Positions 9,305-64,000 of a stretch of DNA of 64,000 nt are shown here, one piece after another. Position numbers and translations under genes: made by a program. The notes under the pieces are model-generated. The model did not search any database. It was not told where the DNA came from and worked only from the letters and a program-made list of their open reading frames with translations. How positions within the stretch are numbered: the stretch's first letter is position 1; every line of letters begins with the position of its first letter. The DNA lies in assembly GCA_907165135.1 (NCBI GenBank), contig OU015567.1, positions 15,190,001-15,254,000 of the forward strand. The letters are read 5' to 3'. The DNA comes from Oikopleura dioica (Eukaryota; Animalia; Chordata).

Positions 9305-12300
9305 TCATTGGCTTTGGAAAGACGTTACATAAGTTACTGTACAGTACTGTATGGCTAAATACAGATCAGGAAACGACCCCGAGGGAAGGGCTTTTGCCCC
9401 TGTGAGGGTCACCGCGGGCGACACGCGAGCCGAACATTCTGAAATCATGGATGAGAAACCAAATTTTTTTGGAGACAACGAGGACTTTCTCTAGAACGGG
9501 TATTGTTTATATTTACCTATCGACTCTTCCCATTCCACGATTCATTCTTCGATTAAGTTCAGGTGATGCGTGCGGCTTGACTCGAGGATCTGAGGACTCC
9601 TTCACATTGATAAGCCTAAATTAAGGTTATTAGAGCTGATAAGACACCTGCTAAATAATGATATGCAGCATATGTATCTTATATCTATCACCATATCATA
9701 TGCTGCTTATATAGTGGGTTATTACTTTGTATCTTTTTGATTTCTCGGTCGGTGCGTTTGAGCCCGATACGATCGATATAAATTACAGAAGGCTTGGCGA
9801 ATATCATCATGAGATGAGTCCTTGTTTGATATCTCCGTAAATCCGCATTCTTTAAGAAAATTAAACAAAAGAAGAAAAAGTTTCTTTTCGAACCTAATTC
9901 TTGAGCTTTTTCTTTCGCAGTTTTCGTCGGTATCGAATCTTTGCTCCTTTTATCGGTGTGCGTTCCTACTAGAATGACGGGAGGGTTGAACCACTGGTCG
10001 GATTTGACTTGTTTCTCGCGGTCTTCGTTTGCGCTGCGGATTTTGTCCTTGAGTTTGTGTTTCAAAAACTCAAGTCGGGGCGGCGTGTGGTAATGGCTGA
10101 TTAATAGCCGGATTCTGGTCACTTCGTCGAAGCTTTTTGGGTCGTTGATGTCGAAGAGGATCATGAATGCATCGCCCCAACGGATTTTGTTTTCATACAA
10201 GTCGGACTTCTCCATATTGATCTAAAAAGAGCACAATTATTCGGAGAAAACGACCACCAAAAAGGTGTTTTTGAGATGGAAGAAATTGATAAATATCAAT
10301 TGCTCAGGATTCTCTAGAACGCGTGTTGCCCTGAGGGGTGTTTTCGCCTTTTTCGTCAGTTCACTTTTTGTCTACCTAAGGAAAGGAGCCAAAAAACCCT
10401 GTAATGGGAGAAGAAGCCGGAAGAAAATTCGCGCAAATCGCCGCCAAGTCCAAGGGCCCTGGACCCGGAAGATACCTTGTAATGAAACAGTAAGCATTGA
10501 ACCGGTTTTGACGGCGATTTTTAGCTTCCCTCCACCTGCGGCAAGGAAGGCCACGATATTAGCCAGAAGAAAGCTGCTTCTTATTCTTTTGGCAAGTATC
10601 TTGGATCATCCTTTATTAACAAAGTAAGTTCTTAGTCATTTTATTTCATAAATTCCATTTTTAACACACACAAGATTTATGACTTTTTTCCTCAATTTAC
10701 TAATTAAAAAAGTCGAATTCTTTTTATTTATGGCCTTATTCAAAGCGCCAAAGTGTAATATAAAAATATGAGTAAAATTGACGTAAAACTCTTTCAGGTG
10801 TGCAGTCCGGGACCAATCTACCGAGTGGACCCCCAGCTGACCCGACACGGCAAGGACGGAACCGCGCGATACACGCAGCAGGGCCGCCACGCCGAAATTT
10901 CCGTTTTCAACACTCCCGGACCAGGACGCTATCATAATGAAAATTGCCATCCTCAGGGAGAGCGAAATGCCCCCAAGTACTCCATGGGATCTCGAACGAG
11001 GTAAAAATCCTGAAAAACAAACAAAACTAGAATTCGCGTTCTAGAGAAACTTGAAATTTTGAATTTTTTTCCAATAAATCAAATCCCCTTTTTAGATACC
11101 GAAAGAGCGACAACTATCCGTCGGCGAACCATTACAATCTGCCGTCGTTGATGGGACCCAAGATCCCCAACATGGCTGCTTCTTCAGCCTTTACGATGAA
11201 ATCCCGACGACAGATCGGGTCCTTTACTCAGGATCTGTCCAAGACCCCTGGTCCCGCCCGATACGAGTAAGCCCCTCCTCCCTTCTTCCTCTTTACTAAC
11301 AATTCCTTTCAGCATTGTTCCCCAGGACCGATACTCCCAGCGACCACCCCAGTTCTCCATGCTCGCCCGACGATTCGTCCCCGGTGACAAGACTAACAAG
11401 CCCGGCCCTGGCAAGTACTACCCAGAAAATGTTAAAATCAACAAGAAGTCGGTACCCATGTACTCGATGGGCATCAGACACTCTGAATACATCGCTCCAC
11501 TCATTGAGGGTCAAGAAGCCAATGAATAAAAATTCTGTAATGAATTTGAGAATAAATGATAAATTTATTAGTATTACCAAAACCGTGTCTTTTATTATTG
11601 AGTGGTTGAGAGAGCAGTAGGCAATCTGTGTAAAAACCTGTGTCAAGGGACCCTGACTCAGGGCCCTGAAAGCTTGGCTCGGCAACCTGTGCCTGGGGTC
11701 GGTCTGTAGGTCCTGTGTAGAAACCTGAGTCAGGGCCCACGCGGCTCTTTCAGGCTGGGCTCGGCAACTCGTGTAGAAAACCTGAGTCAGGGTCTGAGAG
11801 AGCTGAAACGAAAAGCCGCGCTAGAATTTTTCATAGATTGTGATGGTAGTATTCGCGAAGCCGCTACGCGGCTTCGTTTTTAAAAGCCGCTGCGCGGCTT
11901 TTCGTTTCAGCTCTTTCAGACCCTGACTCAGGTTTTCTACACAGGTTGCCGAGCCGAGCCTGAAAGAGCCGCGTGGACGCTGACTCAGGTTTCTACACAG
12001 GTTTTCGGGCCATGGTAGTGGTAAGTTTTTGAGTAGTAGTCCTTTGATTTAGGGAGTAGTTCAAGAGCATAATTACTTGGCGTTAAAAATGTTATCGAGC
12101 CCGGGGCTGGGCGATAAATATTCGAGACTGTTCTCTCATTTCCTAAATGACATTCGTGTCTCCGGTGTTTCTCCAGAGTGCACTAACATGTGGCAGACGG
12201 ATTACTGTATGCACAATATGCTGATTGGGCTTCTTACCTCGTAAGATGTATCCAAAATGTCGAAATAGGCGATTTCGTTGTCCACATATGTGAAGTGATT

Positions 12301-18869: not shown

Positions 18870-20322
18870 AAGAAATTCCTTTAAGACTCATGCGAGCCCG
18901 AATTTTTCAATAAAACAATGCGTCAAAAAATAATTCTGGTGTTATTTTTTACAAAAAATAAATGCGAATTACTGAAAGCAAAATTGATTTATTAGAAATT
19001 TTTCACATAAGCGACATAAATGATATTCATTTGAAAAAATTTTGAGCGGAAGGCGTGCCGCACATATCAGCAAAAATTGATAGGATATTTCATGCTCTAG
19101 TAGATTTGTAGAATTCTAGTCGTTAGCACTTTAAAAGGTCTGTGGCTATTCTGTTACGCCGCGTTGTTTGTTATCTTCAAAGCGGTCTCGGTCTAACCTT
19201 TCGTTCAGTACCTTCTATTCTTACTAGCAGATGGCATGGTGCAAGCAATTCGGAGTATCAAAAAACAAAAGTTCTTACGAGTTCACTTTCTTTATAAAAA
19301 CGACAAAATGTCTCAATTAAAGATAAATAGACTTAGATTAATCCTGCCATGGTTTTGATTTTGCAGATTTTCAAGTTGCTTATTTATCTATAAGCAATTT
19401 TATTTCTTTTATTTTTTGTCGACAGAATTATTTATTTGTACCTTCCTAAATTTCTAAAATAACATCATTTGAGCGTTTTTTTTCTTCTTTGCGAAAAAGC
19501 TTTAAAATTTTCGGGTCAATTCGTAACGCCAACCTAAATATTCATCAGTTGGCTTGGAACATTTTTTAACTAAAACTAACGAAATTGCTCTATAAACCAG
19601 AAATAATGAAGCCTTTTATGCCTAAAGAGATATGAAGACACTATCTATAGCCGGTCATTTGCTTTTTAAAGGTCTTTGGTTATTCTGCCAAGCGGCCTCA
19701 TTTGTTTTCTTCAAAGGACTCCCGGTTTTACCTTTCTCAGTGTTCTATGTTGGATATGACTCGAAAGAACATATTTGAAATCTCAGTACATATCTCCATA
19801 TCGTACAAGGTTGTTAGCCATTTCTTCATTATTGAAAAGGATCAAGACGAAATTACCAATGATTCAGTTAACTGCCTTAATTTGAAATCTTTTCATTGTG
19901 AGGATTTATAAATCCAAAACATTACCTGTCAGTCTAATTGTTAAGGATATAGCCTTGAATATTGAACTTTCGTAGCGCCGAATCCCTGTTACGAATTCAT
20001 TCATTTTCAAATTAACCCTACCTAAAATTCATCGTAGATTTCGAAAATGACCTTATTTTTAGTACTTTCTATGGTGTTTGTACCTAAAAATCGCCTTTAA
20101 AATAAAACAGACCGTCGTTCTCTGAAAATTTCCATTAAAAAGGTAAATCTGGATTGATGATATGAAAGATTGAAGCCTTATCTCTAGGCATAACGTACAA
20201 AAAAATCAACTTTTTCCCTGTAAGAGATATCAATTTGAAACTTTGGGAGCAGCAAGAGTACCCAAAACGACTTTTCAAAATTTTTTGGAAAAAAAATTTT
20301 GGTACTTTTTAGTACTATTTTT

Positions 20323-20541
20323 CTCCAATCTAGCGGTGGATTTTGTAAAAATATTGAAGATTACGGCTTCTAGGAACTGGTTTTTTATTGTACTTCGAAA
20401 TGGAGAGTGGCGCGCGCTGCCAATCAGAGCGAGGGGAGAATCCCAGTTAGATTTCGTCCAAGCTGTCGACAAAATTTCTCCCGTAAAATAGGATGAGCGA
20501 TGGCTGAGTGAGATTTTCCCCTCGCTCTCATTGGCTGCGCG
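20323..20541. mobile_element. Truncated copy of the CTCCAATCTAGCGG MITE
   Basis: Near-identical direct match to ~23155-23372. Confidence 0.85.
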
Positions 20542-20679
20542 TTTCATCCCAACAATGGTTTTTGCAATTTGATTCGGTTCACCCTTCAGAAAACGTTCAT
20601 AGAGTCGCCTATAGCAAACCGCTCTTTTTGCAGGCTATATTCAGTCAATAAAATAAGTTTTGAAAAAAAGAAGCCCAGT

Positions 20680-22363
20680 GCCCGTGATGCATCGTACAGC
20701 CTACACTTGGGCTCGACAACATGTGTAGAAAACCTGGGTCAGGGTCCACGCGGCTTTTCGTAAACGCAGACTCAGTTATTCTACACATGTTACGAAACCC
20801 AGTTCTACTGATTGAACATTCGTCGCTCCCAAGGTTTCGAAACTCTCAATGAGAATCGAATTAGCCCGAAGTTGAGTGTAGCTTGAAACTGGGCTCCTTA
20901 TTCGGGCCTTAACCAAAATGTATATATGGAAATTAACAATAATGAATTGAGAGCCCAAGCAAGAGTCACTCAGAATAAAGCTGATTTTCTCGACAACCAA
21001 TTCCAAAATTTCCAGAGCCTTCAGCTCAGCGATGACTTGCCGCTTGATGTCCTCAGCTTTCTTTCCGGTATCAGCCCTCACAAGGGACAATAAAATGCTT
21101 GAACCTTCTTGATCAATCAGACTGAACGAGAGGCTCAAAAATAATTTCAAAAAACTGAATCAAATCAGAAATCACTTTGAATTTTGGCTCAGGTTTTTTA
21201 CACTGATTTTGGAGCCCAGCTAAGTGCTAAAAGTGGCACTTGTCGGTTCGTAACGGTACCATCTTTGTGCTTGGATAAGTAAACTCAAAAAAACCTAGGG
21301 TATCTCACGCCAACCACTTCCTAGTGCTAACGTTACATATTCCGAAGATTCGAGGAACTGTACACGTTGAGTTTGAAGGACAGCTGGAAATCCGGGTACA
21401 AGAGAATTTATATACGATTGGGAAGGAATCGCGTATTTAACTCGGCCATTTTCGGTTTTCCGGAGAGGGCCCAAGCACTTGTTGGCGTCAACAACGTTCT
21501 GCAAAAATTTTACAATGCCCGTCGTGGGTAGATTCTCCATTTTACTCGTAATCAACATCTGCAACATAACATAATTCCACGTCTTCTGAGAGCCTTGACC
21601 AGAAAAGGATTTATTCTGATCAAAGCTTTCTTCTGGTCTTCTTATTTTTGAAAAAATATTTGCCAAAGAACTAAGAAATTAATAATAATAATAATTTTTT
21701 TTTAAACAAACCAAGTATCAGAGAGCTCTGGAAGAGTTTGATCCATTTCAATATCGGGGGTATCATACATAATATAGTCTTCATCACTATAATCTGGAAG
21801 AGCAGGTGGAGCTGGTCGTTGAATTTTCAAGCAAAAATAATAATCGTCTGGGTTATTGGGAGAATGAAGCAAGCTCACAAGATCTCTGCGAATTTGCTGC
21901 GAAGAACGTTTTGGAAAATCAGCGATATCAAGAACTTCAGGTGGAAACAAGAGGTGTCGTTTAGACGGATCGAAAATTCCACTGAAAAATTAGGTATTTA
22001 AAAATGACGAGTTCATTTTTACTTATGAAGGTAATTGTTGATCTTCGAACTCCCTTTCGATCGATAGTAGGATGAGCATTTGATATAATCTCGCCATCTT
22101 TGTTTGTATCCTTGGTTGTAAAGAGAAACATTTTCGTTCCATTCATCTTCAGTTGTGACACCATTCGCAATAAGAATCTTCTTCACACTCTCTACAGTTA
22201 GCACACAAAAATCAGTCGAATGACTGATTGTATAAAATGTCGAAAAAAATAGTAAAAACAAAGATCTCATTTCGAAAAAAGCCAATGCGATCGGCAAGTG
22301 AAGTAACCGGCGTTCAAGAAGCGTTAAAAATGCGTGCTTGCAGAATACAAGGCGCCGTCTCAA
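20680..22363 (-). CDS. Intron-containing DDE transposase of the CxxH clade (hAT/P/MULE/Kolobok); C-terminal part truncated or disrupted
   Basis: Spliced core YAIPSQSYINSLVP...YVTLALDGTVTNRQVPLLALSCLIDQEG...KISFILSDS...QLRAN...VELGCTMHHG gives D1, D2 and CxxH; 5' exons uncertain. Confidence 0.7.
20706..20802. mobile_element. Short CTGGGCTC-family MITE, almost coextensive with a transposase intron
   Basis: cttgggctcgacaacatgtgtagaaaacctgggtcagggtcc ... actcagttattctacacatgttacgaaacccag. Confidence 0.8.
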
Positions 22364-22429
22364 AGACTTAATTTAGAGAAAAGGATTTTTAATTTTTTGT
22401 TCTTCAAATTTGTGAGTTCTTGAACTACA

Positions 22430-22830
22430 GTGACCTTAGATGACCTCAATTTGAACTTTCGTGTGACTAGATAAAAAATGTCCACTTTTTTAACGTGGAA
22501 CCCATAAATTTTACGTTAGTCATGATTTTTCCGAAAAGTTCAAAAAATTAAAAATTGAACTTTTGACCTTGAATGACCCCAAGATGAACTTTTTAAAAAT
22601 TTTCGATCATGTGATCGAAATCCTCGACATTTTTTATGTTGAACCAATAAGTTTCAGGTAAATGCGGTATTTTTTTCAAAAATCAAATTTTTGAACTTTG
22701 ATGACCTCGAGTGACCCCAAGATGAACTTTTTCAAAATTTTTGATCACGTGATCGGAATCCTGGACATCTTTTATGCCAAACCTATAAGTTTCAAAAAAA
22801 ATCATGTTATTTTTGAAAAAGGCCGATTTT
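22430..22830. repeat. Three-copy ~135-138-bp tandem repeat
   Basis: Units start tgaccttagatgacct (~22431), tgaccttgaatgaccc (~22564), tgacctcgagtgaccc (~22703). Confidence 0.8.
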
Positions 22831-23149
22831 TGAAATAAGTGATGACTCATCAGATTCCGAGTTTTTCATCCCTAGAATCCAGAGAACCCCCAATGCACCC
22901 CTTTTTATTGAAGTTTCTTACTCAGTTTTTTGCGCTCTTTCAAATGAGCATACTTACAACCCCGTAGCTTGGATTGCTCGAAAAATCAATTTTTTGACAA
23001 CTTTGGGGTACTTAAAAAGTACTAAATTTGAAAATTTTGAATTTTTTTTTATTTGTAATGTTATCCGAGCACAAAAATCTATATCATATCTGAAAATCAG
23101 CTTCCTGCGACCTTCAGATAAAAAGTCGATTTTTTGTGCGTTATGCCTA

Positions 23150-23468
23150 CTTATCTCCAATCTAGCGGTGGATTTTGTAAAAATATTGAAGATTATTATT
23201 ATTACTAACTGGTTTATGATTGTACTTCGAAATGGAGAGTGGCGCGCGCTGCCAATCAGAGCGAGGGGAGAATCCCAGTTAGATTTCGTCCAAGCTGTCG
23301 ACAAAATTTCTCCCGTAAAATAGGATGAGCGATGGCTGAGTGAGATTTTCCCCTCGCTCTCATTGGCTGCGCGCGCCACTCTCCTTTTCGAAGTACAATA
23401 AAAAACCAGTTCCTAGAAGCCGTAATCTTCAATATTTTTACAAAATCCACCGCTAGATTGGAGATAAG
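23150..23468. mobile_element. Complete palindromic MITE inserted in the right arm of the TTAA element
   Basis: cttatctccaatctagcggtggattttgtaaaaatattgaagatt ... aatcttcaatatttttacaaaatccaccgctagattggagataag. Confidence 0.85.
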
Positions 23469-24088
23469 GCTTCAATCTTTCATATCATCAATCCAGATTT
23501 ACCTTTTTAATGGAAATTTTCAGAGAACGACGGTCTGTTTTATTTTGAAGGCGATTTTTAGGTACAAACACCATAGAAAGTACTCAAAATAAGGGTTTTT
23601 TCGAAATCTACGCTGCATTTTAGGCAGGGTTTCTTTGAAAAATGAATAAATTCGTAACAGGGATTCGGCACTACGAAAGTTCAATATTCAAGGCTATATC
23701 CTTAAACTTATTCCATAATCGAGCTTCAACAAAAAAGTCTGTGTTACATGAATTAAAATAAACGTCTAACAAAAAAATTTATCAAAGAAATGAAATGTCA
23801 AAAGACAAATTGTCTATTTAAAAGTCTGAAAACAGAAAATATTAACAATAATAAAATTCAAAAAGAAAAATATCATCTTGTTATTTTGCTTACCGATAGA
23901 GGCATCCGCGCGCTTTCAGTAATAGAAAAGCGGCAACAAGCAGCTTGATTTTCGGTTTGGCGCAAGAGCGCCATACTGTATCATATACGAGACACGGTAT
24001 TCTCTCGCTATAAAGATCGAATCATTTCGATCGTGTTATTATCAGAATCTCCAGAAAAAGAGTAAACTTTACTTTTTGGTACTGAAAG

Positions 24089-61135: not shown

Positions 61136-61222
61136 GGGCTCGGCAACCTGTGTAGAAAATCTGAATCGTAGGCCGAATGATCTTTCAGGCCCTGACTCAG
61201 CTCTTCTGCACAGGTTGTCGAG
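61136..61222. mobile_element. CTGGGCTC-family MITE copy
   Basis: gggctcggcaacctgtgtagaaaatctgaatc ... ccctgactcagctcttctgcacaggttgtcgag. Confidence 0.8.
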
Positions 61223-61639
61223 GTCAGCTTATGAGCAGTCATTATGTTGAGCATAATTGATTCTTATAACCGCGCAAATTTATAATACTGGCGATTGCTA
61301 TTTAGCTTTATCTGGATTTTCCGATAGAGCAAAACTGCTTTTTCTATAAAATATTTCAGAAGACAAAGTCCCCCTCCTTGCCGAGAACAAATAATTCCGA
61401 AGAGAAAGTAACACAAGTCTTCCGGAAACAAAATCTAGCTTTACTTCTTTAATTCTTATTCAACCCTATTTTCTGTGCAATAACACTATTCGAAAAACAT
61501 ATATTCAAAGATAATGATGTAAAAATCCGAAACGTGCCTTTCATACCTAGCTTGAATCGAGAAAATTCTGTTTGAATATTTTGTGTATTTTTCAATTTTC
61601 ACAAATAGGAAGTTCTATTGTTGATCTTATATTCACTGA

Positions 61640-61999: not shown

Positions 62000-64000
62000 A
62001 TGAACAAACCTGAGAATCGGAAACCGCGTTCGCGATTAAAAACCCTCGTCAAGAAAATAATCGCTCAGCTTGAGTTCTACTTTTCGGAGCCGAATTTGAG
62101 ACGGGATTCCGTCCTCCGTCGTTTGGCAGGGCCCAGTGGGACGCAGCCAGTTCCGATTGCCTTTATTCTTAGATGCAATAGACTCAAGCAGATAACGCAA
62201 GATTTCAACCTCGTCCGACGGGCTGCTTTTGTCAAGGGATCAGACAATCGCAAGATTGGCTCGGAAACCTGTGTAAAAACCTGAGTCAGGGTCTTGAAAA
62301 AGCTTCGGCATCTATTCTTCAAGCGATGTTGCTTCGTTTAAAAATAACCCGCTAGGGGCTTTTATCATCTTTTAAGACTCTGACTCAGGTTTTCTACATA
62401 GAATGCCGAGCCTAGGTCGCAAGCCTTCTATTTTTGTTAATATTCCTGTTAACGATCCCTCTATGCAGACAGTAAAATATTAAAGCTGGCAGATTTGACA
62501 GTGGAATATGATCAAGGAGGCATTTGTCGCGTCGATCCAATACCACCAAGTCCTCGTTCAATTCGCCACAAGACGGTGTTTATCGAGGGTCTGCCAAAAG
62601 ATGCCACTGTCGAATGGATGGAGGCTCTTGTCAAGGCACTCTCAGATTGCACCCCTTCATTCATAACGATCCCAAGGCACAAGAAGGGAAATGCCTGTGG
62701 GTATGCCTTCCTCGAGTTCAACTCGATAAAGCTCGCGCAAAAAGTCCACAGCGGTAAGCCTTTTTACGTATATCTGACGCGGTTAAAATCAATAAATATC
62801 ATTTTGCTAGCATTTTTTCCATGGAAGTCAACTAAGTTTAGATTTCAACTCGAAACGAGCAATGTCGACAGCGTTTTTGCTTACAAGTAATCGCCGAAAA
62901 CTCTTCCAAAACAAAATGCGCGAAAAACAGTCGAGTATCTTGGAAGAAGACATTCCGATCCCTCCTCCTTGTTTGAGATTTCTCCCAGAGGATGAAAGGC
63001 TTCGCCGGAAACCAAGAACTCCCTTGGTAGAGGTACAGTCAAATAACCTTCAACGAGATGACGCGAAAAATACAGCTGAATTGCCAAAAACCCAGACTGA
63101 AAAGCAGATGAGTATAGATGAAAATTATGTAGATATTCAACTTACTGACCAGGTAAACGATATTAATCTGAAAGTTTATCATTTTAAAAAGCCGGAAATT
63201 CCGACTGATCGAGTCTCCCGTAAAAGGAGAAGAAGTCCGAGCTCACAAGACTTGATTGACGGACTTGAGTGTCATCCGGTAAAGGAACTGAAAATCGACC
63301 CAGATTCGATTGAAGTGCAAGCAGAACCCGCAGAAGAGCATGAACTTATTATCCAGGAATCGAAAGAAACTCAAGATGCCGTCGAGCCCAGTGAACCCAC
63401 TCGGCCCATCTCGTTGTTTTTACGAGCAAGGCGAAATTCATTTCCCCCACTGTTCGGCTGTTACGCTCATCATGGACTGACCTATTGGCAGGGATACTAA
63501 AACACTTGCACGAAAACACTTTCAAATGTCGTACATGCATAACTTATGTAAACGATGGTCATTATCTCTCTAAATTATCGATGTGTGAGTTTTTAGTATC
63601 CAATAAAAGGGCTCCTGAACTTTACGCGTTTGAACAAGGAACGGTTTCGTCGAACCCGCCTGCCATATCCAACGGCCTGCATCAAGACGTCTTGATTCCA
63701 CCACAAAATGGAGGATCAGCGACTAAGTTGTCACAGCCTGAGCGCGAGCTTATCTCTACAGGCACCCAAACCGAATCAAGTTCTATCAACGAGCGCGTGG
63801 AGCATTTGCTGAAGTATGGGCGAAGTCAAGCAGAACAACTCAAATCGAGAAAGCGCAAGATCCCTTCGACAATCAGCGTCGTTCCGGCGAAGAAAAGACG
63901 GCGGAAAAGCCGCATTCGACGGAGAAACAAAGGAGTATCAAAACCTATCAATACACGAAATCGAAGATCAATGTCGAATTTGATCATTCCTTCCTGGGGA
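62000..64000 (+). CDS. LARP7: La-related protein 7-like (La motif + RRM); 3' end outside window
   Basis: IIAQLEFYFSEPNLRRD La motif; TVFIEGLP and GYAFLEF RNP motifs; basic central region. Confidence 0.8.
62258..62412. mobile_element. CTGGGCTC-family MITE copy in LARP7 intron 1
   Basis: ggctcggaaacctgtgtaaaaacctgagtcagggtc ... gactctgactcaggttttctacatagaatgccgagcc. Confidence 0.85.

Follow-up and report, generated by a model that had tools for sequence, protein, structure and literature searches.

In maize, Ds/dSpm (hAT/CACTA) insertions are reportedly spliced out of exons, as Wessler and colleagues are said to have described. Closer to the species studied here, the larvacean Fritillaria borealis is known to possess MITE-derived introns (Henriet et al. 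2019, Curr Biol, as summarised in PMC11282704). In the introners of Micromonas and Aureococcus, one of the two splice sites is provided by the transposon, the other by the duplicated target site (TSD) (Huff, Zilberman & Roy 2016; PMC11282704). In Oikopleura dioica, introns of the G[ACG]-AG class make up about 11-12% of all introns, and 11% in the OKI2018_I69 assembly (PMC8008620; Denoeud et al. 2010). No published transposon origin for the G[A/C/G]-AG introns of O. dioica emerged from the literature searched. The locus presented here could link this class of introns to the other classic puzzle of the species, its massive intron turnover.

The locus lies in a 64,000-nt stretch of O. dioica DNA, which was analyzed as a whole and is called the window in the following. 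We lean towards the view that three segments of a gene on its minus strand are spliceosomal introns that were derived from one hAT-like MITE family, within the coding sequence of a gene that is itself borne by a carrier transposon. MITE-derived intron gain is thus regarded as probable, not as proven. What gives the locus its value is that one MITE family would account for three G-N donors, and that a relative of the gene provides two empty sites as well as an older insertion shared by both copies.

A single gene in a carrier transposon

The gene at 20645-22270 is the only gene of a carrier element whose coordinates, together with those of exons and introns, are given in Table 1. With its TTAA TSD and TIRs that begin with purines, the carrier agrees with the Kolobok superfamily (Kolobok/piggyBac-style TSD); its termini differ from those of the MITE family described below. 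Starting from the ATG at 22270, the minus-strand model comprises 412 stop-free codons, with phases consistent across all seven exons, and reaches its stop at 20645. This model requires the removal of candidate introns 1 and 3. Candidate intron 2 is spanned by an ORF (20776-21150); its length is a multiple of three and it is free of stops, so that the open frame of the window copy needs no removal at this site. In both the window gene and its relative, the stop follows soon after a GCTM motif. Because both known copies end there, the product would have about 410 aa and not the size of a full hAT enzyme.

Table 1. Coordinates of the carrier element and of the exons, ordinary introns and candidate introns of its gene. 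Slashes within sequences mark exon-intron borders or, for the carrier element, the border between TSD and terminus.
Feature	Position	Strand	Remarks
Carrier element	19941..23705		3.76 kb; long complex TIRs and long subterminal inverted repeats; both ends read TTAA/GGATATAGCC
Exon 1	22023..22270	-	from ATG 22270; donor CATAA/GTAAAA
Ordinary intron	22022-21982	-	GT-AG, 41 nt
Exon 2	21712..21981	-	between two canonical introns
Ordinary intron	21711-21671	-	GT-AG, 41 nt
Exon 3	21309..21670	-	equals the 123-aa ORF; followed by a canonical intron
Ordinary intron	21308-21263	-	GT-AG, 46 nt; GTGAGA...CACAAAG
Exon 4	21217..21262	-	..GTVTNRQVPLLALS; final 3 nt CTG are MITE nt 1-3
Candidate intron 1	21122..21216	-	GG-AG, 95 nt; CTTAGCTG/GGCTCC...CGTTCAG/TCTG
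Exon A	20955..21121	-	LIDQEGSS...ILSDSCL; 54% identity with L001 179-328
Candidate intron 2	20889..20954	-	GC-AG, 66 nt; TGCTTGG/GCTCTC...GGAGCCCAG/TTTC
Exon B	20799..20888	-	SSYTQLRANSILIESFETLGATNVQSVEL; alignable to L001 (score 39, 0/5000 shuffles)
Candidate intron 3	20701..20798	-	GT-AG, 98 nt; GAACTGG/GTTTCG...CCAAGTGTAG/GCTG
Last exon	20645..20700	-	(G)CTMHHGHWASFFQNLFY, then stop

The identity of the protein was searched exon by exon. Pfam returned no family up to E 10 for any of the exon ORFs, a PDB sequence search gave nothing meaningful, and the two word searches with the 124-aa and 123-aa ORFs came back blank. HMMER, run against 1.84 billion proteins, found one real relative, P0002, which is encoded on the 1,110-bp ENA metagenome contig L001; a scan of JGI metagenomes with the exon-A alignment revealed no relative. 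The second HMMER match, P0001 (3245 aa, E=7e-19), was rejected as spurious: it is a bacterial repeat protein, and its score is summed over 13 repeats, each matching at about 35% over 58 aa. In a language-model search, exon 3 was weakly similar to a cluster with 13% DBD_Tnp_Hermes (hAT) members, the score of 0.88 falling below the line of 0.9, and the AF2 model of the same exon (pLDDT 40) was unusable. A hAT-like reading of the protein from its motifs (..GSGW.., ILSDSC and GCTMHH) was likewise rejected, since serine stands where the first catalytic aspartate is expected and both copies stop at a point past which a hAT transposase would extend. Given that there is no recognisable domain and that both copies end soon after GCTM, an active transposase may not be encoded; the first-pass annotation had spoken of a transposase core, and none of the Pfam, PDB, HMMER and word searches yields a family for it.

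Other parts of the carrier show structure of their own. Upstream of the gene, 22564-22820 consists of two tandem 119-nt units that are 81% alike. For 22368-22532, two contig versions are present in DNA run X3, one identical to the window and the other differing from it by 7 substitutions and 3 gaps over 164 nt; the latter points to another allele, or to another copy of the carrier, about 94% alike. Furthermore, the carrier contains a subterminal 227-nt direct repeat (95% identical; 20275-20547 and 22954-23379, both on the minus strand). Its units contain same-strand open frames of 90 and 141 codons (..ANESEGKISLSHRSSYFTGEILSTAWTKSNWDSPLALIG..), which is unusually long for DNA of 37% GC. Pfam assigns these ORFs to no family, and the repeat ORF could be connected with the gene, in frame, via candidate introns 20674-20635 (GC-AG) and 20582-20535 (GT-AG).

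The MITE family and its distribution in the window

The MITE family is real and hAT-like. Its consensus reads CTGGGCTCGGCAACCTGTGTAGAAAACCTGAGTCAGGGTC, followed by the inverse arm, and its copies are non-coding elements of 90-200 bp with terminal inverted arms of about 40 nt. The word CTGGGCTC occurs 8 times in the window where 0.85 occurrences are expected, and the longer arm CTGTGTAGAAAACCTGAGTCAGGGTC also 8 times with an expectation of 0. A profile derived from nine arms matches 24 arms, or about 13 copies, in 64 kb; in one DNA run, the arm word reaches a depth of about 5,460. The TSD is 8 bp long, as seen at 61137-61223 (CTTATGAG, 8/8) and at 62256-62415 ((A/G)TCGCAAG, 7/8), and at both sites of the gene that can be compared with L001 (sites 1 and 3) the insert equals the element plus 8 nt. 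A TSD of this length makes it a MITE of hAT style. An autonomous hAT transposase with matching termini was not seen within the window.

The copies are gathered in five clusters of 2-3 copies each, at 11.6-12.0, 15.0-15.9, 20.7-21.2, 51.7-53.3 and 61.1-62.4 kb. Clustering hence characterises the family or the region, and not the transposon-borne gene. The proposal that this gene had been targeted repeatedly is not upheld by this distribution, nor by the three insertions in the gene, which differ in age. At 11620-12011, at least 3 copies form a nest in which one is inserted at the centre of another's palindrome. Even among copies whose TSDs are perfect, the arms diverge by 10-20%, so that divergence from the consensus cannot date an insertion.

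Most of the copies seen in the window are situated outside exons. A copy at a coding junction is found only in the transposon-borne gene and possibly in a La/RRM gene at 62000-62890. The latter is an expressed, LARP-like host gene on the plus strand, whose La exon (Pfam E=3e-15) and RRM exon (E=2e-4) are separated by the MITE at 62256-62415, a young copy of the same family (TSD A/GTCGCAAG, 7/8). The only in-frame joins there are GA-AG, with one donor on the border between TSD and MITE (CGCAA/GATTGG); an apparent original donor, GC, of a 50-nt intron is retained in the second TSD copy.

Candidate introns and their counterparts in a relative

The three boundaries given in the first-pass annotation were recovered when the minus strand was read again: TG/GGCTCC...GTTCAG/, TTGG/GCTCTC...GAGCCCAG/ and CTGG/GTTTCG...AGTGTAG/. 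With these model borders, all three candidates match the G-N...AG class, being short, with G at +1 and AG at the 3' end, and the proposed donors coincide with positions 3-5 of the MITE terminus. That the candidates are spliced, and at exactly which sites, is predicted. If any G is allowed as a donor, frame-keeping site pairs are easily found (5/20 GN-AG pairs near candidate intron 2 and 4/21 near candidate intron 3), and the splice sites are therefore not unique. At candidate intron 1, GG at 21216 is the sole nearby donor starting with G that preserves the frame as well as the homology at LIDQ, and its use would leave one extra codon.

The amount of MITE sequence varies among the candidates. 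Candidate intron 3 is a 96-bp copy (20802-20707) without its first 4 nt but with 6 nt of the second TSD copy (GTGTAGGC, 20706-20699; the first copy is CAGTAGAA, 20810-20803). Its arms are recognized by nhmmer with the arm profile at E=3e-10 (20708-20746) and 0.026, its 3' arm agrees with the consensus at 36/39 positions, and in its 5' arm a C>T at MITE position 6 turns GC into the canonical GT. Candidate intron 1 consists of a decayed copy (21219 to about 21130) and the second TSD copy TCGTTCAG (21129-21122), which matches the first one, GCACTTAG at 21227-21220, at 4/8 positions; the 5' arm is found by the same profile at 21219-21185 (nhmmer, E=7.7e-4), and the 3' arm has decayed, ending in GAGCC. 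In candidate intron 2, a mini-palindrome of the form TTGGGCTCT...GGAGCCCAG, only the 7-8-nt termini of the window copy are MITE-like (TGGGCTC and GAGCCCAG), neither of them significant alone.

For the earlier claims, this means that the family is real, that candidate intron 3 is a clear and candidate intron 1 a decayed copy, and that candidate intron 2 keeps termini only. An intact frame had been said to need all three introns, which is accurate for 21216-21122 and 20798-20701 and does not apply to the 66-nt segment 20954-20889. The element had also been described as closing with its own acceptor; candidate intron 2 does use the CAG of the MITE, and candidate introns 1 and 3 use an AG located in the TSD copy. 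Because the origin of the acceptor differs among the candidates, the element is not a uniform ready-made intron.

All three candidates fold into end-to-end hairpins, with -46.5 kcal/mol (z -6.8), -16.5 (z -2.6) and -21.4 (z -1.9), respectively. Two of the three ordinary introns have no such fold; in the third, 22022-21982, there is just a short hairpin near the 5' end (-5.4 kcal/mol, z -3.1), which does not join the two ends. The TSD pairs of the three insertions match at only about 4/8 positions, a clock that is limited to 24 positions in total; accordingly, the insertions look old, while the reading frame has stayed open. A contig piece of DNA run X3 is identical to the window over 20701-20969, so the insertions are no assembly artefact.

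Contig L001 contains exons 4, A and B and the last exon in the same order as the window, in a diverged copy with 56% amino acid identity over 84 aligned codons. The comparison was made by tblastx and exon-wise alignment; a global MAFFT alignment is unreliable across the indels. For exon B, the alignment is better than 5,000 of 5,000 shuffles and than every other frame of L001. Over the 84 codons, pN is 0.34 and pS 0.77, which is saturated, giving a pN/pS of 0.44; third positions differ 51 times, versus 26-34 at the other positions. Judged by this codon pattern, the gene is under protein-level constraint.

At the sites of candidate introns 1 and 3, L001 reads NRQVPLMGLSLIDQAGNS and NLHQVGCTM without a break. 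At site 1 it continues as ..SNRQVPLMGLS-LIDQAGNS.., and the window has TNRQVPLLALS, 98 extra nt and LIDQEGSS. This block is the 90-nt element plus 8 nt, and excision of the element with one TSD copy restores ALS/LID as in L001. At site 3, ..NLHQV-G-CTM.. in L001 is matched in the window by ..NVQSV-E-L, the candidate intron and G-CTM. The block of 104 nt equals 96 + 8, its second TSD copy encodes the V-G found in L001, and excision of the element with one TSD copy again yields V-G-CTM. At site 2, L001 possesses a MITE of its own of about 100 bp, which follows Ser-Asp-Ser codons as in the window and begins with CTGGGCTCTGCAAGTGTGAAGAGAACCT. The 5' arm of this MITE reaches a score of 36 (0/2000 shuffles), an inverted 3' arm of its own is present, and the variant CTCT after GGG is common to it and the window copy. 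As the site-2 MITE is present in both copies, its insertion is older than their split; going by the distribution in the two copies, the insertions at sites 1 and 3 are later.

L001 carries a stop after its site-2 MITE, with no in-frame AG acceptor upstream of the exon-B homolog, and may be dead. Within Ile-Leu-Ser codons that are continuous in the window, L001 has a canonical 42-nt GT-AG intron (318-361, versus window 20973-20966; CTGAG/GTTGAT...TTTTTAG/TGAC), which reveals intron turnover, by gain or loss, in the lineage of this transposon-borne gene.

The RNA runs X8, X9 and X5, which bear the same species label, contain 0 reads on 20545-22545, even for the highly repeated arms; they are uninformative and probably stem from another lineage or leave the locus uncovered. 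None of the sequence words occurs in the RNA contig runs, and the stretch is represented only in the DNA runs of one study; DNA runs X1-X4 are of the Okinawa lineage, whose animals carry the locus. The case for introns is weakened by the 0 reads of these three uninformative runs, and by the host gene being transposon-borne itself.

Origin of the candidate introns and known systems

The insertions are located in coding sequence, the codons of L001 are uninterrupted at two of the three sites, and the gene retains 412 stop-free codons along with its constraint; together, these observations fit a removal of the insertions from the mRNA. The C>T at MITE position 6 of candidate intron 3, which creates a canonical GT, also favours splicing indirectly. 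According to the model of MITE-derived introns, the insertion at site 2 would be old and common to a distant gene copy, and those at sites 1 and 3 would have followed later. In a host that accepts G-N donors, splicing would start at the first usable in-frame G of the G-rich MITE terminus, i.e. at CTG/GG, CTGG/GC or, after C>T, CTGG/GT. It would end at the AG of the duplicated target site in introns 1 and 3, and at the terminal CAG of the MITE in intron 2, leaving 3, 12 and 6 extra in-frame nucleotides, respectively.

What has to be weighed against this model is that the MITEs may be nested in a transposon gene which is silent or dying, and may never have been removed from any mRNA, the apparent introns being chance pairs of G-N and AG that happen to keep the frame. 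We consider this main rival less likely. Chance would be in line with the 4-5 alternative frame-keeping site pairs per site, but at intron 1 there is a single G-donor compatible with the frame and also with the L001 alignment. Decay would be in line with candidate intron 2 being readable in frame, and with L001 showing a stop and lacking a usable acceptor past its MITE; yet 412 stop-free codons and seven in-phase exons are very unlikely to persist in DNA of 37% GC under neutral decay since insertions with TSDs of about 4/8, and the constraint (pN/pS 0.44, with saturated pS) is observed between copies that share the site-2 insertion. A silent gene would also be compatible with the 0 reads in the three RNA runs, themselves uninformative, with the searches that returned neither a transposase domain nor a family, and with a MITE family that also inserts into other repeats and is clustered in general (five clusters, the three-copy nest at 11.6-12.0 kb among them). 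Quite improbable is a third scenario, in which the introns are ordinary and pre-existing, the MITEs landed inside them or resemble them incidentally, and L001 lost introns 1 and 3 precisely: turnover is evident from the 42-nt GT-AG intron of L001 that is absent from the window, the intron-2 region of L001 reaches about 75 nt past its MITE as if an older intron hosted the element, and the copy at 62256-62415 appears in or at an existing intron of the La/RRM gene, but the extra DNA at sites 1 and 3 is exactly the MITE plus the 8-bp TSD (98 and 104 nt) without any non-MITE intron sequence, and the spliced model retains 1 and 2 codons more than L001, which precise loss would not give.

Returning to MITE-derived introns, we tentatively extend the model beyond this gene: the hAT-type MITE family may be an active intron generator in O. 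dioica, with G-N donors that its G-rich terminus CTGGGC offers to a relaxed spliceosome, acceptors from the TSD or the terminal CAG, and a hairpin that joins the two ends. Exonic MITE insertions would be tolerated at first and polished later, one example being GC>GT at 20797. Should such a generator exist, it would explain in concrete terms where some of the species' G[ACG]-AG introns and its fast intron gain come from, and it would act even on genes borne by other transposons.

The likeness to the reported maize Ds cases is that the termini of a non-autonomous hAT element offer cryptic donors, and that the insertion is removed from the mRNA with few extra codons left. Unlike Ds/dSpm, which are reported as young mutant alleles with leaky, heterogeneous splicing, the insertions described here appear old and fixed in the gene lineage. 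With the introners, candidate introns 1 and 3 share the pattern of a donor in the transposon, here the MITE, and an AG in the TSD copy. Introners are near-identical, very numerous and scarless (Huff, Zilberman & Roy 2016; PMC11282704), whereas the copies found here are diverged, would leave 3-12 extra nt, and are mostly non-exonic in the window. The introns of Fritillaria borealis resemble the candidates in occurring in a larvacean tunicate, in combining TIRs and TSDs at lineage-specific positions, and in a spliceosome that tolerates non-GT donors; their borders are mostly AG-AC/AG-AT, and they are genome-wide and RNA-verified (Henriet et al. 2019, Curr Biol, as summarised in PMC11282704), in contrast to the G-N...AG model borders in one TE-borne gene presented here. 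Finally, the proposed GG-AG and GC-AG borders fall in the G[A/C/G]-AG class of O. dioica itself (Denoeud et al. 2010; PMC8008620).
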